The translations under genes were made by a program, and so were the position numbers. Positions 46-44,782 of a stretch of 64,000 nucleotides of DNA are shown here, piece after piece; the stretch's first letter is position 1; each line of letters begins with the position of its first letter. The notes beneath the pieces are model-generated. The model ran no database searches. It was given only the letters and a program-made list of their open reading frames with translations, and was not told where the DNA came from. This DNA comes from Diadema antillarum (Eukaryota), in assembly GCF_040938485.1 (NCBI RefSeq), contig NW_027270987.1, forward strand, positions 1,302,001 through 1,366,000, given 5' to 3'.

Positions 46-3000
46 TCAGATTCCGCCAAAACCAATGACCTTCATATTCTGGAACTCGTTCAGTCCATAT
101 TTCGACCCTTCCACGCCGAGACCAGACTCCTTGACTCCCCCGAACGGTAGGGCGTTGTCGAAGATGAAGGTGTCGTTGACACCGACCATGCCGACTTCCA
201 TCCGCTCGGCTACCCGCCAGATCTGGCCGATGTCGTTGGAGTAGAAGTAGCCCGCCAGTCCCATCCGCGTGCTGTTGGCGATGGTGACCGCTTCTTCCTC
301 GGTTTTGAACCTGCGTGAGAGGGGTAACCATGGCAACAAAACATCATCTTGAAAGATACATGTACATTGTTGACAGCTACACAGTGCTCTATTCGTAACT
401 ATTTATTTGCCATGGTGCAATATCTGAGTACCAACTTTGATTCATACAAATATTTCTTAACGTTAAATGTTATTGCGTTATCCAAATAAGTATATACTAA
501 TATGATTACGAGCTGCTTTCTAAAATACGGACATTGACAATGAAAAAAGCAACTTCCCAATAGTTTCACAATTTTCGCTGCAATGGGAGGCATTCATTTG
601 TCTGTAACTATCGATTAGGTCATTTAAAGTGGTTTAGCTAAAATGGAGTTGAAGTGGGGGAGAAAACACATGAATTAATGGGTAGTCCTAATGATAATAA
701 ATGATAAGAAACCGGTTTACTGAAATAAGTTAGAAAGGGCTAATAATGTGTGGAGGACGAAAGATGAGAGGTGGGTTGAGATTTCTGCCAAGTGGGTTTA
801 GCTGGAAAGAAAATGAAGTTTAAGACCATGTGCTTTGTGGCCTCTACAATATTTGCCAACAGAGCAATACAAAGAAGTAGTACAAAAGGGAGTCTGTACT
901 TATCAGAAGAAACTTTATATTTCTTATGTCATTTTTTTCTTTTCACATATATTTCAAAATCCTTAAAAGATATATTTTCTGCTTTAGTCTTTCAGCCCAA
1001 TTGTCCTTCTTATTCACAGCGGAAGAAAGATAACCCAAAAGTATTTGAAACACGGCAGTTCCAAACGCCTCTTATACGATAGGTTTACTCTCGTCAACTT
1101 TACGAGACTGCTAACTGTCAATTGGTTTAAATTTGTGAATTTGGTTTAAATTGATTTAAATTCGTGACGGACGCAGAGCATCTCTGTGACGTCACTCACT
1201 TGATGATGGAAGCAAGAGGACCAAAAGTCTCCTCAGAGCAGACGAGCGCCTCCTTCGGAATGTCGCAGACGACTGTCGGCTCGAAGAAATTCCCGCCGAG
1301 TTCCGATCGCTTGCCTCCCACCAAAAGTCTCCCGCCACTCTTCACGGCATTTTGAACGTGGCGCTCAACCTTAAAAGAACAATCAAGGGGATAATCTTTT
1401 TATTTTTGGCGCACACAACGTCATTTACACTACACAAACCAGCGCTGCAGAAAGCTTGAGGCTGCAAGGTTGACTCTGGTGCATAAAAAGTCAAATAAAA
1501 ACATATACTTCCAGCAGTACAACTCTGAAGTCGGACTTTAATTGAAACAAGTAGCAGTACTGTCTCATCCAAGCAAAACAGTTCAAACGCTTACGAATGG
1601 CTTCATTCCCTAGCTAAGTCCATTGAGCAGTTCAGTCGGTTAATTTGCAGATACCGACAGTGCTCAGTCATTACAGTGCAAACAGTGAAAAAAAACCCCG
1701 GGCCAACTGGTATGCTGGAGAACACAGACTTACTACCAACAGGAAAGCAGTACATTTGTGTTGTCATGGAGACTATCTGGCCTCCATTCTGTGATCCATT
1801 AATACCTTTTCCAGTCCCTTTGCGTTGATCAGGGGGCCCAGTGTGGTCTTTGGATCCATGCCGTTGCCCACGACGAGACTTGAAGTAAGCTTGGCCAACT
1901 TTTGACAGAACTCATCGTAGATCCCTTCCTGGACCAGGATCCTGTTGGCGCTGATGCAGACCTGGGTGTAGCAACAAGCCAAGGTTGGTTTTAATGCCAT
2001 GTTGACGTAACTATCAGAAAGGAGACACCCCGATTTACCTACCCGTGTCTATTAACTCCTTATAAATTTTTGTCAAAGATAAGACAATTTCCATGATGAT
2101 ACACACAACAGCAAATAAAGAAGCGTTCTAATCAGTTGTTCATTCGTAATTGGTTGCAATTATTACTTTTATGTAGCTTTGTTACTTTGCCATACGTACA
2201 AAGGTCTTATCAATGTGATGAAGTCACCCTTTTGTAGAAGAGTACACAAGTCACTTTCCCCTTTTGAAGTTGAAAAACAAATGATATTCCGATATATTAT
2301 GATGCCCTGTCCTTGGAAAATATTCATGATGACATGGTCCTGAGACATTACAGAAAGTTTGCCATTGCCCGTCTAGTTCCTTATTCGACTATAATTAATC
2401 TAAATAATATGCATACTGTCCCTCCTTGAAACACAATCCAGCATGTCCAGAGTGTTACAACCCAGCCCTGAAGTTGACACCTTTTAGCCAAGTCTCAATC
2501 CGAGTTTGCCGATGAATATATCCCTTACTTCAGATCTGTGACTGTCTGTTTTCGTCCTAGTTTACAATGTTAATTTCTCAAACACCCATTCATGTTACCG
2601 TAGATAATCATTTGAATCCAATGGTTCCTGACGTCGTTTTCAGTTGATGTAAATGGAAGAACGTTCAGTAAAGGGTACTGATAGAATCCAGTGCGAAATA
2701 TCGGAATGACCACGCAAACCAGCGATGTTTGAAGGGAAATTTAACGAAAATCTCCTCTCACACTACTTCTCCTTATTTTGCTCTGAATATATGTATAGTC
2801 CATCTACACTCACCTGGCCTGATCCGTAAAATTTGAGTATGAAACAACCCATAGAGGCCGCATCGACATTGGCCGAGTCAAAGACGATGAAGGGCGAGTT
2901 TCCCCCGAGCTCCATAGATACCTTCTTCACTGTGCTAGCCGACTGAGCCAGGAGAATCTACAGCAAACAAATATAGGCCTATATATTATAGTCACGTCAT

Positions 3001-6000
3001 AACCGGCAAGGTCATATTTAGGTACGAGCAATGCCATATGTTTTAAATGCTGTCATTTTGTTCTTATTCTCCAACAATTGTGTTTCCTTCACATTTTGAA
3101 GCCATACAGAAACACACAAAGAAAATGCATTCTCTGACCGAGTAGGCTCCCTAGATTTCAGATTTACCAGTAGACCTACGCTAGTTGTATATAGAACATG
3201 GCTGACGCCACGTTTTCTAAAGAGGGTGGGGGGGGGGGGGGAGGACCAGTTTATATTTTCTGGTGCTACTTCCGGGTTTCATCAGCTAACAAACAATGTT
3301 TTATCGGCTCTGCTGATATAACTTACATTAACCACATTCTATGTTTTTACTTGTGCCACTTCCGAGGTTATAAAAGAAAAGTGGTTATACCCTATATGTT
3401 TTCCAATGCATTCTGCAAAAAAAAAAAAAAAAAAAAAAAACCGTTCCGCTGGTTGAAGTAACTGCCAACGTGTAAAAACTTATCGAGAAATCAACTCTAA
3501 GACCTCTTTCAGCATCCTGTTTGAATAGCTGCTGTATGATACTACATGAGACGTGATTGATATTTTCACACATTGATAAAGAATAAGTTAAAGAGCCTAG
3601 ATGTACATAGTGCAATTGGAGGATGTGAGCTAAAAACTGGTGCGCATCATACCCACCTTGCCCGTGGCTGTCGATCCAGTGAAAGAGATCTTGGACACGA
3701 GCTCGCTCTCGCACAGCACCTTGCCGACAGCCGGAGCGTTGGCGCGAGAACATGGCACGACGTTGAAGACACCGTCTGGGATGCCAGCCTCCTTCATCAT
3801 CTGAGATTGAATAAACAATAGGGTGATGGGGGGGGGGGGGGGATAAAATCGTTAACAAAGGTCCCTGAGGCGTCGAACTATACTGATTATATCCCCAATA
3901 CTGCCTTATTGAGAGCTATTGAAATGCATCAAGTTCATTAATCGCAAAAGCAATTGCTAGATTTTATTGTTATTAACATTATCATGATTAACATCATGTT
4001 TATCACTATTTATTCCATTATCACAATTTAAGTTTTTCTTCGTCATAGATCCTTTTTTTTTTTGGGAGTGGGGGAGGCTAACTAAGGTCCCTGCGGCGTA
4101 GAACTAATGATTATGTTTCCAATATTTCATTAAGAATTATTGAAACTATTGAAAAGTTTATCTATCGCAAAGACAATTGTTAGATTTCATTGTTGTTGTG
4201 AGCATTGTCATGATTAACATAATGTCTGTTTATCACTACATTGTATTCTATTATCGTAGTTTGAGTTTTTCTTCATCAGTGACCCTTTTTTGACATGATA
4301 ATGATACTACGATGCTTATAGCGCATATCACTACTGTAGAATCTCTTTACGCTTTACAGGATAAGGTTGAAAATGGAAAATTATAATAAGAGTAGTAAAT
4401 GATCATAAATGATCATTATCATGGGGAGAAGAATTCCACCAATCACTGGTCGAGATATACTTATCAACATCTTTACCATCATTTTCATTATCATTATGAA
4501 CATCAATGCTACTACTATCACCATGATCACTATCATATCGCTATGCGTGAGTGTAGTCGTAGGCCTCGTGATCACGCTTTAGAAATAGTTTTGTTAACAT
4601 ACAATATTGCCAAGAAAACTATCTCGCATCTGTTGCACCAGGCGGATCATAAATACCTTTAAAGCCTTAATTAGGCCTACTATTGAATTCTCTCTTCTTT
4701 GCTTTTCCTTAGCCGTAGAGATTTTCAATACAGCAAATATTTCCGATCTTCTCGTATGAACCTATTATGGTGTTTTCCAAAAATCAAAGAGGACAATTTT
4801 GTTTCTTGGGGGGCATTTCATCAACGAGTTCGTCGGAAATTTTCACCGACAAATTTGCTATCAACCAATCAGACGCAAGAATTTCAGTAGCTTTTAACAG
4901 TTGTCAGTGTAAATCACTGACAAGAAGTTTCATGAAACGGTCCCCTGGTCGTGTCATAAAACCGGACTTACGTCACAAAGGGCAAGAGCTGAAAGGGGCG
5001 TGTCCTCTGAGGGTTTGATGACGACAGTACATCCCGCGGCCAGCGCCGCTCCAGCCTTCCTCGTGATCATCTCCATTGGGAAGTTCCACTGGAATTCACC
5101 ATGACAGTCAGAGTAATCATCTAGTAAATGTTATCAATCTCTGTCGCCAGAGGGCTTACTTTAAAAACACTTCACAGCCAAGAATACACCCATTATAGTT
5201 AATGTTAAAGGACAAGTTCACTTTCTCAAACATGTGGGTTGAGCGAATGCAGCAATATTAGTAGAACACATCATTGAAAGTTTTGGGGAAATCCCACGAT
5301 CTGTTATGAAGTTATGAATTTTTAAAGTGTCTGCGCAATCACTGCTGGATGAGAAGACTACTACAGTGTATGATGTCAGATGCGTACAACGATATAAGGA
5401 AAATAAAACGAGAATTTCACAAAACTTTACTTTTTGAATAAAGTGGAAATTTCTTCAACTTGTTACTGACATATGTTAAGGGTAATATTATTCCCTCTGC
5501 CTCCTAAAAGAGAGAAGTGAAGTGACCATCTGTTATGCGAGAAAATTGAAAGCATGTTGAATTTTCTTTATACTTTCTTTATATCGTTGTACACATGTGA
5601 CATCACAAGCTATAGTAGTCTTCTCATTCAGCCGTGACAGAGCAGAAACTTTAAGAATTCATAACTTTTGAACAGATTGTCCGATTTTCCTCAAACTCTC
5701 ACTGATGTGTTCTACTAATATTGCTGCATTCACTCAATCCACATGTCTATGAAGGAGAACTTGTCCTTTAATGTTACAGTGTATGACTGTTTCTTCCCTG
5801 AGCCTGTGTTGAATGTGCAACGAAATACATGTACTACATTCCAACAGGTAAATCACATATCACGCTGAAGTGTTGATAAAGATTGTGATTTTCACCAGAG
5901 CCTATGTGTGAAACGTCCAGTCTTGGCAGCTTAGCACTAAAGTAGAACTAAAGGATTTCGGAGTAATTTTAGATGATGAGGGCTATGTAACAAACAAACA

Positions 6001-8904
6001 TCACCTCTCAGTATACTATATGAACAGCACATCACGATCCATTGTTACAGTACTCATACACGGAATTTATGGTTAGTCTGTTTATTTTTCATCGATTTCG
6101 CGAAACCTCCGTTCTAGAATCTGTGAGCAGTGTCATAATCCGATTTTAAAATGAAAACAAATATATTATGACGAGTATCAGACTTTTGACAGTATAGCTT
6201 CTGGCATTAAATGACTCTAATGATTTGTCAAGCGCCATTTTGGTAATATCTCTATTTTGGCATCTGGCAACATTAATCCAGAGGGTACTCACAGGGGTGA
6301 TAAGACCAGCCACGCCCACTGGCTGTCGAATCACCAGGGCCCGTTTATTCTTCTGCAGGTTGGTATGGACGTCCCCGACAGTGCGCGTTGCTTCCTCCGC
6401 GAAGTACTTGACGAAACCGGAAGCACCCCTAGCTTCATTGGTCGATTCCATCATCTTCTTGCCCTAACAAGAGAACAGAAATGTGTGGCGGTAAACATCT
6501 TGTGTTTTCAAAGCGCTAATATGGGTGGAATTACAATTATTGTTCTTTTTGAAATAAGTTACAATCGCTAGCAATTGAGACACTTCTGAGCTCTTCCACG
6601 AGTTTCTCAAAATGACCCCCAAAGTTTAGACATGCTCTCTTTGAGGACCCTTTCTTCTCATTCTTTTCCTGAAAGTCCACCTTCTTAGCAGCCTCAAGTT
6701 AAAACTCCACAGAATAATATTATGTTTGGGAGTTCTACTTTTTCAAGATCCAAAGTGAGTTTTCGTATGGTACATTCGTACAAGTGTCTCTCTGTATGGT
6801 CGTTTACTAAGCTAGTATGGCATCCAATGCACTTAGCCACCACAGTTCATTCCCATGCACACCATCTTAAGAATTGCATGTTTCATGTCTAAGTTATTGC
6901 AGAGTATTCGCTCATGCCATCCTTCTTTGCTAAGATAATGATTTAAATCAAAAGAGTGTTACCTAATTTTACTTTCTCTCTCAATCATGTTAAAACTACG
7001 GCCAATCCGGAGTCTACAGCAACATTTATATTTACACTATCAGCACTTTTAATCCGTATACATGCACTGCTCAGTAATTTAGATTAAGTATAGGAATGAC
7101 GCTTATGTTTACAGAGCAACCAATTTGTGAAATATCATTCTGTTGCTCTTCCAAGGTATTACTATGGCGTTCTGGGCTGGTAAGCAGGATATGGAGCAAT
7201 TACTAGAAAAGAAAATATATATATAAATCTCGGTTTAACATCTGATCAACAATTTCTCATTTGTTTCAGAGTGTGCGGGGTAGAGAATTCACTTCTAAAT
7301 GGTGTGTAACGTTTTTAATCAATTTTTCCTCTGATCGTGATCAAGATTGATCGACTTGCTTCATTATACAGTCATAAAACTCAGCGTATAAATTATCATT
7401 GTATTTCCGTTAACAGTATATATTTTTCTTTATTACGATGTTTATCTATCTTGCATCACGCTGTATAATATAATATGTTAAAGTTTTGCTGTAATTGTGT
7501 TTTGTTGGAAATGAATTCAAATGAAATAAAATGAGTGAAAAAAGGTGAAAACTGTGTAATGCAAAGATTTAATGTGACGGTCCCTGACAAATGTTTATCA
7601 AAATGGATAATAAAGATATGAGAGTGTATATGATATCATACGTGATTAAATTCCCACCAAATAAAGATAGATTTGCAAATGGTACAACCGAAAATAAAAT
7701 TTATCCCTCCACGGATTTGATAACATAGGATAATTGAAAGTGATAATGCAAAAAAAAAGAAAAAAGAATGACGTCCAGATGTTATCCAGTATGCAACGTT
7801 AGTAATTTACGAAGAATATTAACTTAATACAGAGTTTCAATGTCCATACCGCGCCCATTTTTTCTTTAAATGATCCTGTATTACCAGATTTTAGACCCCA
7901 AACCTATGAAATGCTGACATCGAAGAACTTCGGCCTTTATAATGCTATAGAATGCAGGTAAGAATATATCACTGTATATAGTTCCAACAATTCAGTGGAA
8001 TCACTGCGTGAAGAACCACCCTCCCCCTTCAAAAAAAAAAAGTTTACCTACTTGCACTTCAACTTTGGACTTTACCAGGGAGGTGGAAAGCTCCTATCTT
8101 CGCAAGACCCATAAAGTATACACACAAGGCATACATGTTAACAATATACACTAAAAATTGTATAGGAACCACATGAGAGCATCGCGTCTGACCTCAACTG
8201 CCCGTTCCACGTTCACCAAACAAGAGGCGGTGAAAACCTCACCAATTTATTAACAATGTCACGTGACTGCAATCGTTCCGCCTTCAAAATTGTTAACTCA
8301 TCCCAGAATCCTGTCCTCTGTGAACTTACATTTTCAACAGTAATAATCTTTGCGAGGTTTTCGACATTTTCATCCATCAGTTGGCCGAGACGCTTTAAAA
8401 TGGCCGCCCTCTCCTGCATCGTACAAACAAAACACAAAGGAAGACAAAACAAAATATGACAAGCAAACAATGAACATATTGAACACATCCTGTAATGGTA
8501 CAGGTGGTGGTCAATTCACTCCATGATACAGTGTGCGATACGACCAGCAATTAGATGGTGATATAGAGGTTGGTATAATATATTGCTTGAGTACTTGACC
8601 ATTGCATATCTTTATAAAGATCTTGAATTGCTCAATAATGATAAACGACATCAACTTAAAGACCCTTCGTATTTTGAAAAAGCCGTCAGTATGTGACATC
8701 TGTTAAATATTCTATGCAAGTCTTTGAATGATACACCTGTGCATAACATATTGAAGACCTAGCATACACGATTTTAAACAATACAGATAGACCTGATCAT
8801 GCATTTCAGCGTTAGCCGTGGAAACATGGGGACATAATGACATGAATCATGCTTATAGTGCCATGTCTAATAAACAGCAGTAGACGGGACTTTATCACAC
8901 ATTG

Positions 8905-8939
<35 letters not shown>

Positions 8940-10574
8940 GCATACACAGTAGATGCACACACAAAATCTATATGAATGCCATTGTACATGAAACGCTCAA
9001 TACGATAATGTGATAAAGGAGCTCATGGGCTCCAATGCCAGGATGCACCCTCGACCTTTCCGTACACACTTCCAGGAGAATGTCAACATTATACACTTGT
9101 ACTTACTATGCAAAATAAACACCACGACCTGGCTGCTTTCCCAACGAAGAGTCAACATTTCATCGTGACTTGACGAAATTAGTACTACTAGTATTACCTA
9201 GCAAAATCGTGGAACAATATTTGTTGTGTTTGACCGTTCATTGGTCAATATCTCGTACGATTCGATGAAGGTCAAGACCAATGGAGGACATGCAGATTAA
9301 TAATTGTTTGGGGAGTCTTTTGTTTTGCATAGAATTTGTCGTATGAAGCCAGGCGTGTTCCTTCTAGTAACCTACGCATGAATAGGCCTACGTGTACCTC
9401 CCGAACAGATTTATTTCGATAAAAACTCGCCGCTGCAACTCTGTTAATAATACACATAACATAATTAGGATCAAGTTCCACCTTTTGCAATCGTTATCTT
9501 GCCATATTCCTTTATAGCATCTGTGTGTGTGCGTGTGTGTGTGTGATGTGTGTGTGTGCATTCTTTTCAGACCCAAGTGCTAAAACGAACACACAAACAT
9601 TGGCTACACTATGAAACTAAAATGGCGCTTTAACGTATAATAAATGGACATGGCGTCTAACTTCGAATCAGGTCAAAGGAAGGTGTGGAAACGTCGGATC
9701 TCGCGGATTAACACAGGTCGAAATGTTTTCAATTTGGTATCACTGTAATGTTTTCTAGATGTCTCACTTTTTGACCTTGTTTTGCGAGAGATAACATTTT
9801 GCCATCTGATGATATACAGAATCTGACAGACACATACAAACATTATCGTATGTGGAGTCGTCGACCCGTAAATGAGAAGTGGACAAACGAGTTTTAGGAA
9901 CAGTATTCAGGACTGCACTCGAAAGTATAGTTTCATAACTACGGAGCAAGACTGGAGTGATGAAAAGGGTGTGGTGTGTACACTGACAAAGAAGTGCGTT
10001 GTCAGAGTGAACAAAACATTAGAAATAAGTAGTTAATGTTATCAACGGACTAACCCTGAAATTTAATCGGTATATGAGTGACCAAGAGTACAGTAACGAG
10101 CGATGTCAGGAATGACACCTGAAGTAGTTTCTATATAACGTATCCGTAAGACTGGAGCAATAATCAAAGGTGTAGCATCTGTTCTGAATAAAAAATGTTT
10201 GACATTTAGACTGATTCCTGAACTTTTTTTAAGGGGGAAATTTGGGAGCGGTGATTTCGGTGCACAAGTCATAGTTTGGAATCATAGAAACTGACCCCAA
10301 GGAGTGAGTTTCGAGGGAGCAAGATTCGAGTAGGCCTATAATGTGCGAGAGTTGCATATAAACCAACCTTCGAAGTGGTTTCCCTCCAAGTTTGGAAGGC
10401 TGTGTACGCCCTTTGGATGGCCGCCTCGGTGTCCGCGGCATCGGTGTCGGCCACGTTGGCGACCACCTCTCCCGAGGCGGGGTTGAGCACCTCGAAGGTC
10501 TTTCCCGACTTCGCCGAAACCCACTCTCCGCCAATGAACGCCTTCTCGCGAATAAGAGGATTCTTGTCCGCCAT
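46..10574 (-). CDS. ALDH5A1-like: SSADH-like aldehyde dehydrogenase, paralog B (9 coding exons, 485 aa, no mitochondrial presequence)
   Basis: Exons assembled by hand, all GT-AG: 10574-10368, 8413-8330, 6463-6293, 5088-4972, 3800-3657, 2957-2814, 1961-1806, 1369-1200, 310-46 (TGA 46-48). The frame stays open across all junctions. ALDH motifs: WNFP, KPSEDTP, FTGST, SMELGG (catalytic Glu), GQVC (catalytic Cys), [15 protein letters not shown]. Confidence 0.95.
3854..4290. repeat. Diverged tandem duplication of a ~225-bp unit in intron 4 of paralog B
   Basis: Units at ~3854 (aaggtccctgaggcgtcgaacta...gtttttcttcgtcat) and ~4080 (aaggtccctgcggcgtagaacta...gtttttcttcatcag) align end to end with many substitutions. 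Confidence 0.8.
5209..5767. mobile_element. Non-autonomous Kolobok-type MITE
   Basis: Perfect 11-bp TIR AGGACAAGTTC/GAACTTGTCCT flanked by TTAA at 5205-5208 and 5768-5771; no ORF. Confidence 0.85.
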
Positions 10575-11620
10575 CTTGTACGATTAGACCGGCACTGGCG
10601 TCTGGATTCCTAGAATGAATTTGAAACACAAACGAATACTATATTGCCTGCCATTGACTAAAGAAAGTGAACGGAGACAGGCGACGTTACAGATAGATCG
10701 ATTGATAGATAGGTTGGAACAACAACAGATAGATAGACAGCCATATTATGTATAAAATAGACAGACCGCAGTACTTAGGAAATACCTAGTCATAAATACG
10801 GCGGCTATATCCAAGTAAGGCTCTGATGAAAAAAAAATACAATGTACTTAAGGTAAACGTGGGAGTAAAGACATGTAGGCCTATACCTATGTCTTATGCA
10901 CGGTCCTTATACAGGACGAACAAGCAAACATTTGTCGTTGTTGCTTTATCGTTTTATCACGTCTTTCGTACTCCGGACACCTGAGCAGAAACAAGGGGTC
11001 ATGCCAATATGACCTCCTTAAGCCTATGCGGACTACATCAATTTCCTGTGCACAGGTATGTGTGTGAACTTTGATTCATTGGCATAGAAGGGGTCAAAGA
11101 GAAACTTCATCGATTTCATGTTGGCTCATACAAACCGAAGAAACAGTGAAATTTCTATTATATCGAACAAAATCAGAAAGGGATGGCGTTACAGAAGGGT
11201 GTTTTTTTTTTTGAAATATAGTGAGATATATGTAAAAAATCCTCGGGACGTGATGAAAATTAATCATTGCTTCGATCTCTCCGATTAATTATCCTGTTTT
11301 CTATCGACTGAAAATAAAAGGTTATTATACTGTGTTAGAATTATTTCACAGTTATGCCAATTAAGCAATCGATCATAATACTTTGACACAAGCTCTCGTA
11401 TAGTTGCAATTAAAGAGTGATGCTTTTTTGTACAAATTTATAGGAAAGTCGAAAGGAGGACGGAACATGATGAACAATAATTATCCATGATGTGTACATG
11501 TATATTCATCAAATTTGATGGACGCTCATAAATATTCATTTGCACACCAATGGGTGCTTCATCTGTTTGATGAGAGGTAGACTGGAATAACAAGGTAAAA
11601 CATTAAAATCGACAGCAAGG

Positions 11621-11900
11621 ACCACCACTATACCAACAACAACATCAATATCAACACCACCATCAACACCACTGTCACATCATCAACACCACCATCAACA
11701 CCACTACACCAACAACAACATCAACATGAACACCATCATCATTACCCTTCTCACCACAATTTCTACCATCAACCAAGCCACAACAACTATTGTCACTACC
11801 ATAAAATATACCACCATCACCACCACCACCATCGGTCAAACTAACACCATTGATACCACAACCAGTATCTCAACCATCAGCACTGCGAATATAACAACCA
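11621..11900. repeat. Degenerate (ACC/AAC)n low-complexity tract
   Basis: Runs of accaccacc/aacaacatc; the source of the spurious Thr-rich ORF 11726-11974. Confidence 0.85.
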
Positions 11901-12389
11901 CCAACGACAGATCTGGCCCAATGACGCTTTTCAAACTGACAATTTATCACAAGTTGAGCTTGCCGCTCGGGTAATATTATACAAATATTGCACATTAAAC
12001 AGAGCGTTGATAAGAATTATCTACCCAAAAGTAACCTTGGAACACTGAGTTGGAAACACTTGAGGCGAAGCAGAGTGCTTTGGACCGTTCCAAAGTAAGT
12101 GGGTGAATTATTCCATCATAATGCCCAATCGAGTAAATATGCATTATTTCAAAATATGATTTACTTTCTGCGGCAGCCATTTTTCGCAAAATTCCCTGGC
12201 CAGCAAGCTAACTGGATTGTACACAATAATTGCGATGTAATCTATATTGTAATAGACAGCCTGCACGAGCGCAGACGAGCGTATATTCGTTGGTACTATA
12301 TATATATGAACCGACCATGCTGACGCATGGTAAAAAGTAAAGTTAGTCGTTTTGGCAAAAGTAAAACGAAAATACAATAAAAGTAGTAA

Positions 12390-12485
12390 AGAAGAAGAAG
12401 AAGAAAAAAAATATGAAGGAGGACAAGAAGAAGAAGAAGAAGAAGAAGAAGAAGAAGAAGGAGAAGAAGAGGAAGAAGAAGAAGA
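12390..12485. repeat. (GAA)n microsatellite
   Basis: Direct reading; the source of the spurious poly-Ser and poly-Leu ORFs. Confidence 0.95.
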
Positions 12486-13189
12486 CTGGTCACACGATAG
12501 GTCTATAGCTCTCACTCAACCTTCTGATTAGGACCAATATCACCTTTTATAGGATCATTATACGGTTTCCTGGGATGGATGGATGGATGACAAAATAGAG
12601 AACTAACACAATTTGATAAAACAGCAAGACTTTTTGACACAGTCAAAATTATGATACATAACATATCTCGCGTGGGTTGCAGATGGGCCTCTCCAATGAA
12701 TGATGACTTCTGGATTATCATCAGGGAGATGGTTCCACCTCCCTGATGAACTGTAAGTCTTTCTCTATCAACCACAAATCACACTTAGCGGGAACAACCC
12801 TCACACGCACTCACGGGCAACATATCACACACATCTGAAATACTATACTCCTCCGCCTGTCCTACAGAACTACATACGAGTGTGTCATCAAAACAAACGG
12901 TCTCATTTTGAAACATTGACCCGTAGCCAATCCCTATAAGATTCCGTGTTTGATCTCCCACAAGGTCGCAGTTATCAGTCGTTTTCCTGATTGACTGATC
13001 TACGCTGATTTACCCCTGCCGTTCATTGTTGTATTAGTGCAACAAAATATTACGTGTGCCATGTGGTTGGCAAGAGATATATCATTGAAACGCACAGTGT
13101 TACAATTAGGGTTTTCCATTTCGTCGCATGTGCGCATTCATAACTTTGAACTTGGACTCAGACAATTTAAACTGACACAGTATACTTAC

Positions 13190-13330
13190 CAGGCACTGAG
13201 CTCTGCTGGTTCACAGCTACCGTACGAGGTACGCAAGCGGGGAGTGATGGGTCACATTCAACATACCCTCGACCCAACCACCTACGGCTGAGTTCGTTCT
13301 GATGACTCCGCCCCTCTCTGATCGGAGACA
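13190..13330 (-). promoter_or_regulatory. Probable promoter and non-coding first exon of paralog B
   Basis: CpG-rich patch with a GC box (GGGGCGGAG on minus, 13306-13314) and a GTAAG donor at 13189-13185; matching acceptor ttcattctag at 10611-10610, 35 nt before the ATG. Confidence 0.5.
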
Positions 13331-13543
13331 ACTCGGATCCAATACCTGTCGCGCATCGACGATAACGGCGATTTTATTGACATCGCGCTAAAATATCGTA
13401 CAAAGTTCATAACCATTGTAACTGTCTGCAGACGGCGATGGCTACATTGTCAAAGAATGAAAAACAGAGAAACGAAAGATCAGTGAGAAGAGAACCAAAA
13501 TTGTCTCCCTTGTCAGCAAAAGCGACAACACAAATACCTTTAA

Positions 13544-14155
13544 AGAGGGTCCAAAAATAAGTTAGTCTGAAAAAAAAAGAGTAAAATTATATTAGTTCAA
13601 CGGAAAAATTTGACTGAAATCAGATGAAAAATAAGGAAGTCATGACATTTTGAAGTTTTGCTGATTTTTTTGCGAAATAGTTCTTGTACAGTGGATATGA
13701 TATGCATTTCAGTGAGCTAACATGTCATACCCTCACAATTTTCCATTGATCGTGAACAAAAAAAAAAAAAAAAAAAAATGACGGAAATTCAATGTTTCTG
13801 TCATTGAAGTCTGAAGCATGACGTTATTCCTGGTTGAATAACTTCAGAATAGTGATCATAGGAGGATTTGGGCCTCGGGCAAAATTGCATTTGAATGAAA
13901 AACTGGAAATTTCAAAATTTTATGTACAAACTATAACATGCCTATATGGTAAGTTGTGAGGGAATGACATGCTCACTTTGTCATTTGCATATTCATATTG
14001 ACTGTTCAAGAACGGTTTCCCCCAAAATAGCGAAACTTCAAAAAAACTTCCTTATTTTTCATCCGATTTCGATCAAATTTATACAGTTGAACTCGTAATA
14101 TTTTACTCGACTCTTTCTTTCCACACTAACTTACATTTGGATTAAATTTTCCCCT
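13544..14155. mobile_element. Non-autonomous Kolobok-type MITE (imperfect TIR)
   Basis: TTAA at 13540-13543 and 14156-14159 around AGAGGG.../...CCCCT ends; AT-rich non-coding body. Confidence 0.6.
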
Positions 14156-15409: not shown

Positions 15410-15475
15410 TACCAAATTGCGTTTTTGTTGACAAGCAGAGCGCACTATGACAAAATATTGAAAGGTTTGAATTAA

Positions 15476-22804: not shown

Positions 22805-24575
22805 TCACACACCGCCGAAGCAGGCATACTTGATCTCCATGTATTCGTCGATGCCGTACTTGGATCCCTCGCGCCCCATTCCCGACTCCTTGATCCCGCC
22901 AAAGGCCGACACGTCGGAGGAGATGAGGCCCTCGTTGATCCCGACCATGCCAACTTCCATCCGCTCGGCGACCCGCCAGATTTGGCCGATGTCGTTGGAG
23001 TAGAAGTAGCCCGCCAGTCCGACGCGCGCGCTGTTCGCGATTGTCAGCGCCTCCTCTTCCGTCCGGAATCTTGGGGAAAAAACAACAACAAAACTAAACA
23101 TGAAACAAATAACAACGTGATAAAAGGGTAGAAGTTTAAAGGGTACCGAACAGACAGATTCCCCTTCCTGTTGACATTGCCTTTGACTGAGTTAAAGGTG
23201 AAAACACCTTGAAAATTAATTTGTGTATGTATAAGAAGCAGAAAAAAAACCCCTGAAGAAATACAGTGCTACGTTTGAGGACATTCGGATCAAACCTGAG
23301 AAAATTATGATTTTTTTTTTTGTCGTTGTTGTTACGACAAATCAAAAATAAACTGCAATTCTGTGATGTCACACGCATGCTCACGCCATTGGCGCTGCAT
23401 TACAAAATGATAAAAAAAAAGAATTTCCCTGAAGCAAATCCCCATCATACAGGCACCCTTGAAACAAATACTATATTACATATGACATAATAATTCGGTA
23501 CAGTGCTAATGCATCCAACTTGGCACCTTCACACCCTCAAGTTGAAAAAACACATTGCCAACAAACCTAACACATGAACTTGATTTCTCATCAGTTAATA
23601 GTTGAATTAATTCATATATCTAAATTACTAATTTGAATAAAGCCACAACCAGTAATGCTACTCTCGCTCTTAGATCTTATGAAGAATTGGCCTTGGGTGC
23701 ACCACTTCCGGATCAAACTAGCCTTACAAACTAGTCTGGATTCCAGACCGTCGGGTTGTACTAATTTCCTTCCCAGAATATTAACGCCCTCTAACGATAA
23801 AAGAAATGGCAGGTTCAGCTGGATGGTTCTGTAGACAGTCTTCGGCAAAGGCAGCTGCGAGTAGAGCGCATTTGTGAAAGGAGTACAGTTGGCAAAGGGT
23901 CTGGTAACCGCCTGAATAATGTGATAAACAAATGATACTACAGGCAAAACTTGGGTGAAAGATCCAAAATGACCCAAATAAAAGGATAATTTCTGGAAAA
24001 TATTGTTTTTATCAATTACCTCTAGTACATCTAGATGTTTGATGACTGTCACATGAAAAAAAAAAGACCATTTCACAACCATTCACAACCCTTCATAATT
24101 TGGTCTTTCAGTAAACGATAGCCACGAAAACCCTATCTCACTCACTTATTCATTTGTTAACTGAAATGAAATGAACAGAAAAACATGCAAAATCTGACTG
24201 ACAAGATTGTTAGCTTAGGTTTGACATGGCAACCAGCAATATCAGTCATACCTAAGTTATTAAGTATTCGCAACAAAATTTTAGGAAAAGTCACCGAATT
24301 AGGTTTAAATTGATTCAAAGGCGCAAGAGTGGCAAATGGAGATAGGGGAAACAATGTGCCCCTGGGATTTATAGGGTTACAGGTCAAAAGCAAATTAAAG
24401 TTATTAAACGTTATTAAGCAGAGTGGTTTCTTTGACATTACATAACACACTTCCTAACCAGAACGGATTTAAGCAAGATTGTTGACTCAAATAGAAGTTA
24501 GTGAGATCATCCCCACTCCCATAAAAAAACGACAAAGAAACAATCAAACGAAATAAAACACTCCCCTCCCCTCCA

Positions 24576-24624
<49 letters not shown>

Positions 24625-27600
24625 TGGAAGGGGGACTGGAACGCTTGGGATTAATGTTCAAGGAAATCCAAACTATCATCACTATGTCTATTTAATCATG
24701 ACTTTATTCAAGTTGAAGGCAATGTGAGTAGAACATTTACAAAAACCAGGTCCACCGTTTTTTCAATACGAAGTGCAGGTTTAAGTTTTTAGAGTTACGA
24801 AATAACTGTTGAAGGTTACATTACCACAACAAAAGATACATTATCATGCATATGATACTTTCGAATATCAATCAGTTATCTCAATCTTCACTATCTTAAT
24901 TTTTACGTGACCCTGTGCCCCAAAATCCCCACAATCACCAACTAATGATAAATACATAAATCCATCTCTACGACTATAAACCATTATTTCAGAATATACA
25001 GAAACACAAACACAAAATTCTACATTGTTCGGCTATCGCCTTTACCCATGGCCCACTCTTTCTCAATAAAATCACTATCGATCTACACTCAGTTAAAAAA
25101 AAAATACATGTAATTAAAACCTTTACCACCAAAACACATTTAAAACAAAATACAAACAATTACCTTGTGTTCGCAAGGCAAAAGATATAAACTCAACTTT
25201 CCAGACGTATTATTTATCCATTTAACACCCTGTGACCTTGTGACCCGAGATTCCCTCCCCTTTCCATCAGAAACGAAACTTAATCAATGTAGTGTACTAC
25301 GTATACGCCTTAAACCTGCGGCTAATACTAAAATTTAAAAAGAAAAATCTATTTCAATACATATCTCAAACAATATTCTGAAATCACCGCATAAAAACGG
25401 TTACGGATAGACATGCATATTGCCTCCGGTGACACTTCGTCGCGAAAACATAATGGGTGTGAATATCAGCTTGTGAAGCCCTACGGATCTAGGTACCGTA
25501 CCTCCCTAAAAGCTTTCTCTTTTCTGGCTTAGAATATCGTAAAGAGGAAGGTATGGCGAGTTTAGAAAGTATCTGAAAGAAATCATTTGGACGAATTTTG
25601 GAATTTGCTGTTTTCAGAATTGTTACCCGGAATAATGAGTCCCCTTGCCCAGATTTCTAACGCATAGAATGACACGGAGTAACTCTTATCCTGGGTGTCC
25701 CGCACGATTGAACTATACTTTTCTACTTTCCTTTGATGTGCATCCTCGAGGTTGGTTTCAATGGGGACAGTTAACTCAACAATCGTGATTTTTTTTTTCT
25801 TCTTCCCACAAAATAAGTAAATCTGGGCGAAAACTTGTGGTGGGAATATGTGCAGGTACGGTGCCCCCGGCAATTGAATGTCCTTTTAAATCAGTGTAGG
25901 TGTAGACGTTCCCATTGAACAGATTTTCAAGAAATGTTTTGTGTATGTACCTCAGTAAATCATTATGTCGCCACTCATATCTAAAAGAGAGGAAGAAATA
26001 TGGGCAATTTGAGAGTATAATGATGCAAAGTACCTGTGGTGCCCAGAAAAAAACAAACACATTTATCACTAATAAATAATAAAATATACGATAGTGACGT
26101 GACCATTGTGACTCTCTTTCAATAGCGGAGTTGTTGCTATCATTAAATATATTTATTTATTTCAGAATGGCTTGATCAGTATCAGCTGCTTTTCATTATT
26201 GAATGCAATAAACTTGTATCACACCAGTGGCAAGGAATTCCAGGTCAGCTGCAGTAACAATTTGAAAAAAAAGGAAAAAAATCGACAGTATAACAAATAT
26301 CAAAACAACAAATAAAAATCGTGTCTCTGACTCTATACACTCTTTTAACGAAAGGAAATACAAAGGATTACAAAAAAATCTCGAGTTGATATTAAAGTAC
26401 ACATGCGCAAGAAAGCAGCCATACGTCACTTTTTTCTCTTTTTTTTTAGACAGTTGGGGGGGGGGGGGGCTAGTGGCAAAAGTACGCAAGATGGGGGGAG
26501 GGGGAGGGGTAATCACGGAGAGCTTCGATGGCATACTGGACTATCTTTATATCCGTTTACAGAGTTGACTGAGTTGAGTTGACTGATGCATTTGCAGCAC
26601 ACACACACATCCGTTGATTTTTACGTCGCCGTGTTGATCACAAAGCTGGCACTGGTCCCGAGGAGCGTCTATTGGCATCACTCTGATCTACATCATTTTC
26701 AACGGGATCATTCTGGGTAGTGTCATTGCGAAGGGTCGATGCACTGGTCTTGTCATTAGCCGTTTGAAACCCTCGAGCTATGAAAATGACGGCGATCATT
26801 CCAATGCTTTAGGTGTAAGTACACTTACGGTCTCCGAGATGGAAATCTCCGTCTTGCACAGCCCGTCAGGTTCAACTTTGTGGGCAGTTTGGATGAGGAC
26901 AAGAGCATACATGATTCTCCAGTTTGTTATCCCTTTCGTAGTTTGTATGTGAAGGCTCCAGCCCGGTACTTCGTGGACTACTCAGTACGTTTGTATCTAT
27001 TGGTCCTTACACCAGCTGCCAGCCATAGATTGGACTGATGCGTTAGGTGACGAACATACTAAACTCCGGGCAATAACAGCAAAGACGATCAAACAGAGTT
27101 GCATATCTCATAAGGCTCTCCAACAATGTCCCTGAAAAGCAGACTAGATAGAGTACGTATCAAAATCACACACGTGATATATTCAGGCTCTGCAAAATTT
27201 GCATGTAAAACGAAGTACGGGAATATAAAAGTTTCAGCGACATTTCTCCGTCCGTACAAACCACGGTCAAAACTGTCTTAAAACAAGAGTAATTCTTGCC
27301 TATGAAAGAATCACAGACAATGACGAACTAGGACTGACTACAGTCCACCGATGCACAGGTACTTGACGTTCATATACTCCAGCATGCCGAACTTGGCCCC
27401 CTCCTGTCCTCGCCCGGACTCTTTAAAGCCCCCAAATGTGGCGCCCTCGGTTGAGATGAGGGGCTCATTAACCGCCATCATGCCGAACTCGAGCCGCTTG
27501 GTTAGACGCCACACCTGCCCAATGTCTCCAGTGTAAACGTAGCTCGCGAGGCCGTATCGGACGCTGTTGGCTATAGCAATCGACCCTAATCCTAATCCTA

Positions 27601-30600
27601 ACCCTAACCATCAAACCCTAACCCTAACCCTAACCCTAATCCTAACCCCAACCCTAACCCTAACCCTAACCTCCTCCTCGTCCTAAAATCTGAGCGGGGA
27701 AGTGGACTTTGCGTCTTACTATCCCATGATTCCGTACGATATCACTTTGCTGTGCCACTTCGGCCGCACAATACAGCAACTTTGACATTTTCGATTACGA
27801 CACTGCGACTGATGGTGAATCATAACTTGTTTTCAAGGACATTACACCGCAGTCTATTGCGGATTTTGATATGAAAATCTGTGAAATTTTACACATATAC
27901 GGTAATCATACTGTAACAGACCAGTTATGTTAATCTCTGCAACTAAGCAATGTACAATTTGAATTGGCAATAGTGCCTTACTTGAGTCTAGTTTTGAGAC
28001 TAATCTTGTGAGTCTGAGAGGTGTGGATGAAAGCTAGCATGTCTTAGCTCAAAGGTTCCAGAAGTTTCAACAAAGTTGTGGAGAAACAAGAGGCCTGAAC
28101 TTGGTGAGAAACCTGGGTTACAATGCCTGGACTATGAAAATGACAACTTTGTTATTATATAGTTGTACAATAAGTGACAAGTGTGAGTTTGAAGCATGAT
28201 TTGTCAAGTTGTGTAAAGAAAGGTTGTAGTCAGTGCTGCTGAGGGCAGCTGCATTACGCAGAGTTACTGCATAAGCTAAGGTATGGTACCGATGGTGCAG
28301 ATAAATGTGTGTGTTATACCTGGCAAACTAGAGAGTAACTTGTCACAATGCTATGTCATATATGAAGAATACTGGTTGGCTTCATGATATTAGAGGGAGC
28401 TTGTGTGATTACTTTTGGGTGACACAGTAATGTATGCTCCAATGCAGGCAAGCCGTTCATGTTTATGCATAGTGTTTCCATTGGAAGTTTGATGCTATGC
28501 AAGTATAAATAGTCACGGTGTAATCACTGAAACTTTGAAAGGTGACTGATTATAGGTGATAAGTGATCCGGAGTGATTGTGTAGTAAGAAATAAGGGAGA
28601 TGAAGGAAGACAGGGTATGCTGTTTCATTCCTTTCCCTAGGAATAAGGTTGTAGTTTTATGGCATAGGTTGCAGTGTGAGTGAGAATGCCATATTTCAAG
28701 AGTCACTTCATGCTGTGTTCATAGTTTAATGAGAATGATGGAAATAGAAGGTATGACAAGTATCCTGTATGAGGTACACCATACGATGGAAACGGTATTA
28801 GCTTTACCATTCAGGCATTGAATGATGGTACGTCATAGCACTCTACATGGGGTATAAGGTAGCCTTAGATACATGGTATCGATCCATCACCCAGAGAGAT
28901 GATGAACTAGTTGTATCTAGGTGTAGTGGTGCAGTGTACTAAAATTCAAGAAGTATGCTGTATCGGCTATAACATACACCTATGTTACTGTAGCATCAAT
29001 GTGTTGTATATTCTTCTCTATGGAGAGTGTGCCAGATGGGATATGTTACCATGCTCGCTGGAATGTATAATACGGATGACACTGGCTAGGTGTTTGATAG
29101 GAGTTATCTGTTATGACAAATAGAGTCTGTGACTCAAATTATAGTGCCGTTAGGTACAACAAGACACTAAGACATTCATGTTATTTTTATGTAATGTTGA
29201 TACTACAGAGTTCAAGTTCACTGAGTGGCTTGGAAGTCACTGCACGGAGTCGAGTCTCGAGAGAGCTCAAGAGGGGTGAGTTGTAGTAGGGCAGTGATAA
29301 GCATATAGGCTAGCAAGCTCAACACTGCTTAATTTGTACATAGGTTGTTGTTGAAAGGAAACTTGTTTCAGGAAGTTTTTGGTCAGTTGAAATGTGCTTT
29401 GTTTAATACATTTCAGAGTTGATGTTGTACGATACAGTATATTGGTGTTGATAGTCCTACAAGCCTGTTTGCTGACAAGGTAATATCATTAAATTTGTGC
29501 TGTTTGTAGTACATATAGCAGGCTGTGAGTTATTTTGCATATTATGAAAGCAGATGTTGGGACATATACACTGAGTCCAAAACAATACAAAGCAAAATAA
29601 ACAACAAAAAAAGGGGGGGGGGGCAACTATATGCATGTGGTTGAAATAAATCAGAAGGGAGTACATTGTATATTGTGAACTTAAAGAATAAAGATGATTA
29701 TCAGTGTAGATAATCTTCAGTGACAATGGTATAAAATCATATTTGTACAATGGTGTATGGTAATGAAAACGATATGGATGGAAAATCATAAAACGTGATA
29801 TTGATGCTTCCATTACAGTTCACATGGATTGGAATGCTGAAAAGCATGAATGAACAAAACTTAAGCATCAGTTGTGAAGTATGTTACAACAATATGCAGT
29901 TTGTAGGTATGTTACATGGCCATTGTGTAAGTCATGGTTTGTTCTTTGTTGTTGTTGTTCTTTTCAGGGTTAAGCCACCCTCAATTAAAGTCTGCCACTA
30001 TACTGAACAAATGATGGAGTCCAGTGTCATTTGTCTCAAACCTGCTGTGTTACAATACAATTTATACTATACACTGACAAACAAACAAACAAACAGACAA
30101 ACACATAGGATTGACAATGTTTTACGGATTTCTAACACGGCAAGGCATCTTGTCGAGTAAGGAGAATGCGATCCGCTGCAAACCGATTCTTTTTTTCTTT
30201 TTAAAGTGCCACTATATTAAGTCATTCATTTTAGTTGTTCAAGGTTTCTTCGAGTGACGTTTAAAAGCTCTTGAAAAAAAATCTTGGAAAGGAAATATAT
30301 ATTAGAATTTCATTTTTTTGGCACTTTTAATCTGAAAGCTATTTCAGTTATTTCTTATTTTAAACGAAATAACCATCCGTGTTCAAAATTATGTATTGAT
30401 TTGAGACTTAATCTGCATTCACATAGCATTATACTTTGTATTGTCCACTGAATTGTGGCGGTGAATGATAATAAGAAAAATCGCCTACTAGACTATACTG
30501 TACGTGTGTAATAGAGCCTAGAACTACAAATTATGAGTACGTTCCTGCTCTCGGCATTTAATCAGTGTTTCGCAGAGAGATTGGTACATGGGACATGGGG

Positions 30601-33600
30601 CGGGGGGGGGGGGGGGGGGGAGGGGTTCCAATGAGCTAGTCATGAAGGGTATCTGACTTATCAACCAACACTTACTTTATGATCGGGGCCAGAGGTCCGA
30701 AGGTTTCTTCTCGACAGACGAGGGCGTCATTCGGAACATCGCGAATAACGGTGGGCTGGAAGTACGACCCGCCAAGGGCGTGTCTCTGGCCTCCCACCAG
30801 GACCTTGCCGCCACGAGCCACGGCATCGTCCACATGCTTCTCCACCTGTAGACATCAGAGAGAGAAATGACGGCAGGTATTGTTTGTTTGTTCATTTTCC
30901 ATCTGAGAAGATGGTTGGATAACCAATATTCAGCTACGATAAGCTGGTCTCGCATGGGCTCCAGTTGATGTGAGGCGGAACACTTCACCGGGTTAAACAC
31001 GCTGCTCTTTACGATCTGAATGAATGAAGCGGAATCTTTTACGTGCATGAGATGTGGCTCTCTCACACACGGGACCTTCATTTTATGTCCTATCCGAGGG
31101 ACAGAGTGTTTTGCCTCTTGCTAGAGGGGGACGGTATCATTACACACAACATTGCTCAGTCCAGACTCGGGTTCGAACCCGGGTCGCTTGGGTCTGAGGC
31201 AGACGCGCTACCGACTGAGCCAACTCACCACACTAAAGTTTATAACAGGGACTCACTGTTAGCTCCAGTGAGTTTCGACAAAAATCATGAAAATAGTAAA
31301 TAAATCAAAGAGTCAGCAAAATAATGCAGGAAGAAGCAAAGTTGGAGTAACACTTAGCTATAACGAACTGTGTCGTACAGTAGTACGATCAAAATGTAAT
31401 GTCTGGCTTTGATTTCAATGGACTGAAATTAACTAACGTTTCAGCCAGTTGATTGCATTCGAGTATTATAATGATAGAAATGGCGAAAGGATGACATTTT
31501 GAAATTAGCGTGATACACACGCTGTCATTCAAGATAGACTTTGGAGAAGCTCTTGAATTTAATGTGCGAGGAGCGACCAGTGAAAGAAAGGGAAAACAAT
31601 TCCAACAAACTAACAAACTAACAAACACATAATCTTGCGACTACACAATGTCGTATTCGAAGCAGTTATACATACTTTCCTAAATTTCTATGGTTATTTG
31701 CTGTAATTGAATGCTCTGCTGTTCGCATTGACTTCTGAGCGTTCTGTATCAGCTTTCCGATCCACACAGGGGCCTATAAGGAAGATCGTATCATTAATGC
31801 CCAGGGTCATGGCTGTGAGATTACTCAGTACTTTTCAACATGGTATGGCAGCATAGATTTACAAACAGAAAGAGGAAGCTCTGAAAGAGGAAATTACTCA
31901 ACAATGTGATATCGGAAAGTCTAGAAAGTTCACTGATCGGCGCACAAAAGTTATATACATGTGTGGATGGGTTTCGAAATGCTTTCTCACTATCAGCGAA
32001 ATAAAAATCCTAAAAACCTATTGAGATATCAACAAGTCTTCGCAAAACTCTATACTTCACAGCTGGAGTGTAAAGCAACATGTTTCACTGGTTTTGATTG
32101 GATATAGTACTTAGAGACAATCATATAGACTTCTGTAGGCTAGTCTTGATCTTTTCCTCTTCTTTNNNNNNNNNNNNNNNNNNNNNNNNNNNNNNNNNNN
32201 NNNNNNNNNNNNNNNNNNNNNNNNNNNNNNNNNNNNNNNNNNNNNNNNNNNNNNNNNNNNNNNNNNNNNNNNNNNNNNNNNNNNNNNNNNNNNNNNNNNN
32301 NNAACTGAATACTCACGAACATGTTTGGCGTATGCTTGCACATGTCACATATCACCCTTTCCCCCCTCCCCCTCCCCCTTCCCCTCCCCCCCCCCCCCCC
32401 CCCCAATGACGTTTCACGTGAATATACCCTCTGCTCCCTCATCGTGCAAGTACTACATTGATAGAGCTTGGATCAAAGGCTAGCACCCACCTTCTCCATA
32501 CCACTGACGTTGATGAGCGGTCCCTGGGTGGTGGCCGGGTCCATCCCGTCGCCTACTACCATCTTCTCCACCTCGGCGCTCAGTTTCTGGCAGTACTCGT
32601 CGTACACTTTCTCGTGCACCAAGATTCGATTAGCGCAGACACAAGTCTGACCGAAACAAAACAACAACACACACAAACAAAAGGGGAAAAGGTCAAATTC
32701 ATTCTGGAAGTGTTGCATGTACTGTAGCCAGTTATCAATGTAAAACTTCCACACTATCCCTCATGAATGATTCCAAATGCTGACAATCTCAAGTACACGA
32801 AAGTAACTGTTAACTGCTAAATATGTTAATTGATAAATCGGTTAACCGCTATCCACAATGACAATTCTGGAAAGCTCACAACTCGTTAATATTTCACGCA
32901 TCACAAATAGGTCACACACGTTTCACATCACTATGATATTTTCACAAATTTTTGCGTCTTAATCCAATGCTGCCAAAACACGACGGTTTCTGTTTCTTGA
33001 TGTTTTCTTCTTTATAATTCCTTTGCTATTGGCAACATCTTAGGTATATAATATCAATATGACGTATAGATGTTGTGCCGCTGACAAGGGAAACGTCTTA
33101 ATTTGCGAAATTAAATCAATACCAAATTTAGACAAAGAGCAGCAAACTGTTTTTCTTAAGAATAATAACAGACGGTCGAGTTGATCATACTCAGTACCTG
33201 GCCCGATCCGCGGAATTTGCAAACGAGCGTGCCCGCCACGGCAGCATCCACGTTCGCTGTTTCGAAGACAATGAAGGGGGCGTTGCCGCCGAGCTCCATG
33301 GAAACGCGTTTGACCGTGTCTGCAGCTTGCTTCAGGAGAATCTGGGGGCACGCACCCAGAGAGTGTGTGGAAGACAGTGAGTAACATACACGAAAATATA
33401 GAAACTAATACACACATAATTAGATAATGCACATGAAATACGTACCAATACACAAGAAATGTCGGATGTTTAATATCACGGCTGTTTTCCGGGCTTCCGG
33501 GCAATCAATAGGTTATCAATCATGCACTTAATAATCACAAACAAATTAAACACTTCCACCGACATTTCATAGATATTCATAGCATTTATGATACATCGTC

Positions 33601-44751: not shown

Positions 44752-44782
<31 letters not shown>

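Follow-up and report, generated by a model that had tools for sequence, protein, structure and literature searches.

Relocalisation of gene duplicates into or out of mitochondria is well documented, for instance in a survey of the human mitochondrial proteome (PMC2790464), and the duplication of paralogs and the use of alternative starts have been described as interchangeable routes to dual localisation, with pairs such as TOP1/TOP1MT as examples (bioRxiv 10.1101/2025.03.27.645657). The mitochondrial succinic semialdehyde dehydrogenase (SSADH) ALDH5A1, represented by the human entries 2W8N and 2W8O, is the closest described enzyme to the genes considered here: in this enzyme Arg213, Arg334 and Ser498 are essential for the binding of succinic semialdehyde, Ser498 is conserved in all SSADHs, and Cys342 forms a redox-switch disulfide linked to mitochondrial redox changes, the human Cys342Ala enzyme still being active (PMC11681614). 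We describe a window of 64,000 nucleotides from the sea urchin Diadema antillarum (contig NW_027270987.1, positions 1,302,001 to 1,366,000; all coordinates below are those of the window unless stated otherwise), which carries two ALDH5 (SSADH-type) genes, A and B, both on the minus strand. With a probability of roughly 0.77, we read B as an intact, selected, presequence-less and cytosolic ALDH5-derived dehydrogenase with a changed substrate, encoded beside the mitochondrial enzyme A.

Both proteins resemble ALDH5A1, being 56-58% identical to the pig enzyme, and A has a presequence-like extension together with the whole SSADH pocket, whereas B is without the extension and carries Tyr334, Phe498, Ser342, Glu209 and Val339. 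As in other neolocalised pairs, one urchin paralog has a targeting peptide and the other has none, and both are retained under selection; what differs is that B would have lost the signal of a mitochondrial ancestor via a changed 5' structure, that its pocket is remodelled too, and that its location is deduced from the protein itself. In alternative-start isoforms (bioRxiv 10.1101/2025.03.27.645657; Ptychodera flava X1/X2) the presequence-less form likewise starts at a Met of the mature N-terminus, and the Ptychodera start MAAKNPFIRD is similar to that of B, but the urchin short form has its own gene, which is unable to make a long form. A holothurian paralog of 488 amino acids (aa; KAJ8046947.1) is also without N-terminal extension and groups weakly with the B-type sequences, that is, B and its orthologs (support 82/52), but it keeps Arg334, Ser498 and the Cys-Val-Cys motif and looks like an ordinary SSADH minus its presequence. 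B is a further, well-supported case of a known relocalisation event, with a changed pocket and a clear genomic mechanism, and not a new kind of system; a literature search found no paper on sea-urchin SSADH paralogs.

The two genes and the start of paralog B

The exons of A and B were located through stop-to-stop reading frames and an all-against-all comparison, which gave nine paired exons in each gene (Table 1). All exon junctions are of the GT-AG type, the nine exons of B join into an open 485-aa frame, and the two models are identical letter for letter to the NCBI proteins XP_071486182.1 (B, 485 aa) and XP_071486185.1 (A, 565 aa). Exons 2-9 have the same sizes and phases in both genes, and the proteins are 64% identical over 485 columns, the alignment beginning at residues 80-85 of A. 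The Aldedh domain (Pfam PF00171) is complete in both; profile positions 1-49 match residues 18-67 of B, encoded in exon 1, and the last exon matches 378-461. The same domain is listed in the database for A and for the B ortholog of Diadema setosum, with which the D. antillarum B entry shares a 90% cluster. The B gene and its start are already in RefSeq, where the protein is named 'mitochondrial-like' by homology.

The ATG of B stands at the position where four other urchin orthologs start. Read on the minus strand, the surrounding sequence is ttcattctAG/GAATCCAGACGCCAGTGCCGGTC TAA TCG TAC AAG ATG GCG GAC AAG, in which a splice acceptor is followed by a short leader with an in-frame TAA ahead of the ATG. 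Acceptor, TAA and ATG are all retained in D. setosum (locus L001), where the acceptor tract differs by one base and is otherwise identical, and where the leader is 32 nucleotides (nt) long owing to a 3-nt deletion. Among the camarodonts the leader measures 13 nt in Strongylocentrotus purpuratus and 14 nt in Lytechinus variegatus, so that no frame is conserved through it. Residue 7 of B corresponds in alignment to residue 10 in the mature chain of human SSADH (PDB 2W8N), which places the beginning of B where the processed mitochondrial enzyme begins. A preliminary description of this locus had B begin at the mature part of A, just behind an in-frame TAA, and gave A about 75 additional Arg/Ser-rich residues. 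Its account of the B start is confirmed in every detail checked, three codons separating the TAA from the ATG, and the surplus of A over B comes to 79-80 residues.

The N-termini differ accordingly in character. In A, 84 residues precede the conserved PLFRE, and the extension contains 10 Arg and 18 Ser/Thr, no Asp/Glu before residue 62, a net charge of +9 over 60 residues and an amphipathic moment of 0.53. In B the conserved PLIR is preceded by 5 residues, Asp3, Glu10 and Glu17 are acidic, the amphipathic moment is 0.14-0.25, and the first 25 residues belong to the conserved ALDH fold. Across species, the A-type and outgroup N-termini have a net charge of +3 to +5 with no acidic residue in the first 25, and the B-type N-termini are acidic from position 3 or 10 with a low amphipathic moment. 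Basic extensions of 66 residues are found in the A-types of S. purpuratus and of a further urchin transcript, the D. setosum A-type has a long basic N-terminus like A, and an R/K-M-S motif stands at the extension boundary in the A-types of Diadema, S. purpuratus and that transcript. Overall, extensions of 22-84 residues occur in A-type, sea-cucumber (503 aa), starfish and brittle-star proteins and in none of the B-type; a presequence-like extension is present in all of the long-N-terminus, canonical-pocket sequences from echinoids, sea cucumbers, starfish and brittle stars that lie closest in the tree. No C-terminal peroxisomal signal (PTS1) was found in the B-type proteins, which end in GFGGI or GFGLL. 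We consider it solid that B is without a presequence, and its cytosolic location probable. A, judged by its presequence and its retained canonical SSADH pocket, is the mitochondrial enzyme of the gamma-aminobutyric acid (GABA) shunt.

B orthologs were found by word searches seeded with the window exons on the scaffold and then with the D. setosum ortholog. Exon translations were aligned to scaffolds; MAFFT scattered several exons, and the version used is without exons 8 and 9 and without residues 1-13 of B exon 3. A search of representatives with B exon 1 returned mostly exon-sized fragments of open reading frames (ORFs) at no more than 68% identity, with one full-length scaffold (P0087, considered below). 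The orthologs in D. setosum, S. purpuratus, L. variegatus and L. pictus are each 485 aa long and start MA-x-x-N-PLIR; identity to B is 97% for D. setosum and 76% for S. purpuratus, and for every one of the five species the B protein is listed with a single isoform. Proteins of the A-type came from D. setosum (565 aa), from S. purpuratus (547 aa; XP_030853387.1, XP_030827901.1) and from one further urchin transcript, and both types are present as spliced transcript contigs.

The most direct view of a B-type 5' end comes from Strongylocentrotus. The 90% cluster of the S. purpuratus ortholog contains an intron-less contig of 1,700 nt (L007, from SRR31798689) that encodes a 485-aa protein 98% identical to XP_030853381.1. 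Its 5' untranslated region (UTR) of 203 nt corresponds in the S. purpuratus genome to an exon of its own, which lies 1.26 kb upstream and has the donor AACCTG/GTAAGT; the first 29 bases of the contig are unmatched within the 10 kb of genome compared. The acceptor CTCTCCAG/ to which this non-coding exon is spliced stands 13 nt ahead of the ATG. The 13-nt leader itself is without a stop, but the junction forms an in-frame TGA (ACC TGA TCA CCA TCC AAA ATG), of which the first exon supplies TG and the following exon A, with more in-frame stops upstream. L. variegatus has the same acceptor, 14 nt before its ATG. The layout proposed for Diadema, in which an intron follows a non-coding first exon and its acceptor stands close to the ATG, is thereby demonstrated in a species that shares B.

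For Diadema itself, the preliminary description had placed an upstream exon at 13190 with only a short closed upstream ORF (uORF) in it; donor and uORF are both present, and use of the exon is predicted by the same layout in the S. purpuratus transcript. Aligned to D. setosum, the block 13170-13410 shows about 92% identity, hardly any gaps and a retained donor, as against flanks of 65-85% identity with many gaps. No other non-coding stretch is as well conserved between these two species, and the level is similar to that of coding exon 1. Within the 15-codon uORF the frame is shifted in D. setosum by a 1-nt insertion, so that the uORF peptide is not conserved, and this speaks against a coding first exon. 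In the single sequencing run compared, the putative first exon had a depth of 0 and is therefore not repeat DNA. Judged by its conservation, the block behaves like a conserved non-coding exon or a promoter. Alignment of the putative Diadema first exon to the Strongylocentrotus 5' exon gave no real similarity beyond the donor context.

A presequence further upstream was also sought. A relic of the presequence of A, or homologous upstream DNA, was looked for between B and A at the protein and DNA level, and nothing was found past the coding part. Scanning 10575-15500 for ORFs that begin with ATG and end in a phase-0 donor gave a single candidate (12916-12815) with seven acidic and no basic residues, which was rejected as a presequence exon, being acidic and unlike a presequence. 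A word search for transcript fragments with residues 1-130 of the D. setosum ortholog found no B-type fragment. Several independent lines thus indicate that no presequence is hidden upstream of B.

Active site, selection and origin of B

A comparison of B from D. antillarum with its D. setosum ortholog gave 39 synonymous against 13 non-synonymous differences (ratio of non-synonymous to synonymous rates, dN/dS, 0.10), and all nine exons and their splice sites are intact in both species; B is under purifying selection. In human SSADH numbering, checked on the 535-aa pig sequence, A and the B-type proteins of all five species keep the catalytic Cys340 and Glu306 as well as Arg213, Lys214 and Glu515. 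Five changes are likewise found in 5/5 B-type species, namely Arg334 to Tyr, Ser498 to Phe, Cys342 to Ser, Ala209 to Glu and Thr339 to Val. The A-type and the holothurian 488-aa type keep the canonical pocket residues, A itself holding Arg213, Arg334 and Ser498. Because the ligands Arg334 and Ser498 are replaced, B is very likely an active dehydrogenase whose preference for succinic semialdehyde is gone. Since one positive charge is lost and Tyr, Phe and Glu are gained, our guess would be a less acidic, aromatic or amino aldehyde as substrate. The earlier picture of a cytosolic ALDH5 beside the GABA-shunt enzyme thus stands as regards ALDH5 descent and the mitochondrial nature of A, but with Arg334, Ser498 and Cys342 lost B is probably an SSADH no longer.

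Maximum-likelihood trees place A and B both inside the animal ALDH5 clade. The B-type sequences form a clade with 100/100 support on a long stem (0.41-0.42), and together with the A-type and the holothurian 488-aa type they make up a 98/94 clade within the echinoderm ALDH5 sequences; a sister position of the B-type to the 488-aa holothurian type has weak support (82/52). The tree ((A, sea-cucumber presequence type), (B, 488-aa type)) falls short by 10.3 log-likelihood units (p-AU 0.028), and since this two-paralog tree is disfavored we do not claim a single duplication at the base of the Echinozoa. The root of the tree and the order of events are not firmly resolved, and a possible patch of gene conversion in the last exon calls for caution. 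By the distribution of the sequences, the split between A and B and the short start of B are older than the Diadema-camarodont divergence. Loss of the presequence in the B lineage is the economical reading, because the sea-cucumber 503-aa, starfish and brittle-star proteins carry presequence-like extensions. The compartment switch after duplication that had been proposed from the sequence is thus upheld in the absence of the presequence, seen in five species and in the Strongylocentrotus leader; the cytosol as destination is a prediction from sequence, and the event is neither recent nor specific to Diadema.

Short forms are also seen elsewhere. In sea cucumbers the 488-aa paralog (P0401, which is Holothuria leucospilota KAJ8046947.1, P0157 and P0278) starts MEKYGIPQ and stands beside the 503-aa presequence form; a transcript of this type (L006) has a 5' UTR of only 17 nt, which makes its start less certain. 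Presequence-less ALDH5 proteins beside longer forms occur as separate clades in crinoids (P0306, P0323; 485 aa) and in the nemertean Lineus longissimus (P0335; 484 aa), and further ones among Logan transcripts (P0154, P0158, P0165). From these sequences the presequence seems to have been lost several times in invertebrates. The full-length match mentioned above, a contig of 476 aa from a JGI metatranscriptome (P0087), is a very divergent animal-like ALDH5 relative without presequence; its residues 213 and 334 are Gln and Ile, and VNDTLYVP replaces VNEGLISS, the VNDT recalling the urchin B-type, but in the tree its long branch (1.5) is placed away from the B-type.

We suggest the following scenario. 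The mRNA of Diadema B would start near 13300-13400, in a short non-coding exon that ends at 13190, and splicing of 13190 to 10609 would leave the 35-nt leader with its in-frame TAA before the ATG. From such an mRNA no presequence could be translated, and B, having no targeting peptide, would stay in the cytosol and there oxidise some aldehyde that is not succinic semialdehyde. Before Diadema and the camarodonts separated, a new acceptor and an upstream non-coding exon would have taken the place of the presequence-coding 5' part of exon 1 in the B lineage.

If B is indeed cytosolic and has a new substrate, sea urchins hold an unrecognised aldehyde-oxidising activity, and the database label 'succinate-semialdehyde dehydrogenase, mitochondrial(-like)' would be wrong on both counts. 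The A/B pair would then offer a clean, dated example of a mitochondrial enzyme escaping to the cytosol, the route being a non-coding exon and a new acceptor in place of the presequence-coding 5' end of exon 1. Given the short forms of sea cucumbers, crinoids, hemichordates, amphioxus and a nemertean, ALDH5 without a presequence could be common among invertebrates, in contrast to the vertebrate picture of a purely mitochondrial ALDH5. General principles are unchanged by this finding.

Alternative explanations for the short start

Several points weigh against a presequence-less, cytosolic B. The first exon and the transcription start of Diadema B are predictions; the RefSeq XP_ entries for Diadema, Strongylocentrotus and Lytechinus are computed models, with an independent transcript contig for Strongylocentrotus only; and localisation is predicted from N-terminal measures that are crude sequence features rather than a trained predictor. 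A search of sequencing runs with B exon 1 returned one run of uncertain kind (contigs only, 0.18 of words), and over 8000-13600 this single run, made up of DNA-like contigs of a relative, covered only repeats, with no exon 1, no putative first exon and no useful joints, and is uninformative on transcription. In both Diadema species an AG directly precedes the ATG (AAG/ATG, 10576-10575) and could in principle accept a coding exon. Some matrix proteins, moreover, enter mitochondria without a cleavable presequence. The AG before the ATG, the stop-free 13-nt leader of S. purpuratus and a Diadema transcript structure that is a prediction would all suit an explanation in which B has a presequence in an unannotated upstream or alternative first exon, the short form being one isoform or an annotation artefact. 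We hold this to be very improbable: in both Diadema species a functional-looking acceptor leaves an in-frame TAA, the AAG/ATG site has a poor pyrimidine tract and is absent in the camarodonts, which read AAA/ATG, and in the Strongylocentrotus transcript a stop at the exon junction ends the frame. The sister species also differ by indels of 1 and 3 nt, in the leader or first exon, that break any frame, the 5 kb upstream contain no basic ORF that has a usable donor, and one isoform per species is listed in five species. An outside chance, somewhat greater than that of a concealed exon, belongs to the idea that B reaches mitochondria or another organelle by an internal or non-canonical signal, as proteins imported in this way are known to exist; the first 25 residues are, however, part of the ALDH fold, acidic and low in amphipathic moment, the C-terminus is not a PTS1, and the loss of the redox-switch Cys342 fits life outside the matrix. 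The notion that B is a decaying or non-functional duplicate, its missing presequence being part of the decay, could draw on the long stem branch (0.41-0.42) and on the lost substrate-binding residues, but it is already contradicted by exons and splice sites that are intact in two Diadema species, by a 485-aa protein in five species, by the dN/dS of 0.10, by the fixation of the same replacements in five species with the catalytic residues kept, and by transcription and splicing in Strongylocentrotus.

Two other views accept a B that is made without presequence and differ in how it arose or in what came first. One is subfunctionalisation, in which the ancestor made a mitochondrial and a presequence-less isoform from two starts, A keeping the long and B only the short form. 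In Ptychodera flava (P0404, P0191), isoform X2 (486 aa, MAAKNPFIRD) is an exact suffix of X1 (515 aa), Glandiceps (P0206) has an internal MAGKNP after a basic extension, and in the amphioxus Branchiostoma floridae (P0286, P0285) isoform X2 starts at the internal MAKSYS of X3; the short hemichordate and amphioxus isoforms suggest that single genes may achieve dual localisation by alternative starts. The start of B shares the hemichordate MA-x-KNP motif, and A-type urchin proteins have an internal Met 9-10 residues before the mature part. The hemichordate MA-x-KNP genes, on the other hand, group apart from the echinoderm A/B clade, so that the shared Met may be convergent, the hemichordate and amphioxus isoforms are computed models, and the presequence-bearing proteins of starfish, brittle stars and sea cucumbers have no Met at that place. 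We take this origin as possible but doubtful. The other view, which we likewise advance only tentatively, is that of an old cytosolic ALDH5 branch in the Echinozoa, in which the compartment would have changed first and the chemistry second, the reaction of B then being new for ALDH5. It is suggested by the holothurian 488-aa form, which is without presequence and has a normal pocket, to which the B-type adds Tyr334, Phe498 and Glu209; along such a path ('relocalise, then neofunctionalise') B might, for example, oxidise an uncharged, aromatic or amino aldehyde.

Other features of the locus

The coordinates of the features are collected in Table 1. In S. purpuratus a single chromosome record carries the A-type gene and B; the 10 kb upstream of B contained no A-type exons in S. 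purpuratus or L. variegatus, so that the tandem spacing of Diadema is not shown there.

Table 1. Coordinates of the A and B genes and of the 5' region of B (window positions, except in the last row)
Feature	Position	Strand	Remarks
Paralog B, whole coding span	46..10574	minus	9 exons, 485 aa, stop codon included
Paralog A, whole coding span	22805..47543	minus	9 exons, 565 aa
B coding exon 1	10368..10574	minus	69 codons, ends TTSK; donor GTTGGT after 10368
B start codon ATG	10572..10574	minus	context acaagATGg, good Kozak match; same start as XP_071486182.1
In-frame TAA	10584..10586	minus	three codons (TCG TAC AAG) between TAA and B ATG; kept in D. setosum
B non-coding leader	10575..10609	minus	35 nt from acceptor to ATG; no upstream ATG
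B splice acceptor	10610..10630	minus	AG at 10611-10610 after pyrimidine-rich tract, tttcaaattcattctAG
Putative 5'-UTR intron of B	10610..13189	minus	predicted; donor CCTG/GTAAGT at 13190/13189, acceptor 10610
Putative non-coding first exon of B	13190..13330	minus	3' end fixed by donor; conserved block
Closed uORF in putative first exon	13217..13264	minus	15 codons, MLNVTHHSPLAYLVR followed by stop
A exon 1	47097..47543	minus	gene model
N-terminal extension-coding part of A exon 1	47292..47543	minus	84 residues, presequence-like; same exon as mature N-terminus
S. purpuratus B 5' exon and leader	L003 8575-8731 and 9988-10000; L007 1-203		transcript-genome comparison

Inside the putative UTR intron, the segments 11730-12090 and 10833-11400 show 85-92% identity to high-depth contigs from the single run, and 11730-12090 is also about 90% conserved with D. 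setosum; both are probably copies of dispersed repeats rather than regulatory sequence. Between A and B, a Kolobok-type element at about 15046-19837 is absent from the orthologous D. setosum interval. The D. setosum alignment jumps from window position 19838 to 15045 at a single point of L001 (6570), which marks the element as either an insertion in the D. antillarum lineage or a deletion in D. setosum.

Gene A of D. setosum has two annotated isoforms of 565 aa (XP_072181695.1, XP_072181696.1) that differ only in their last 86 residues, as expected of a mutually exclusive alternative last exon. Isoform X1 uses the ortholog of the third terminal exon of the window, 27341-27669 on the minus strand. 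In D. antillarum the first codons of this exon are replaced by TTAGGG-type repeats, and on this sequence the alternative C-terminus of A appears to be broken.

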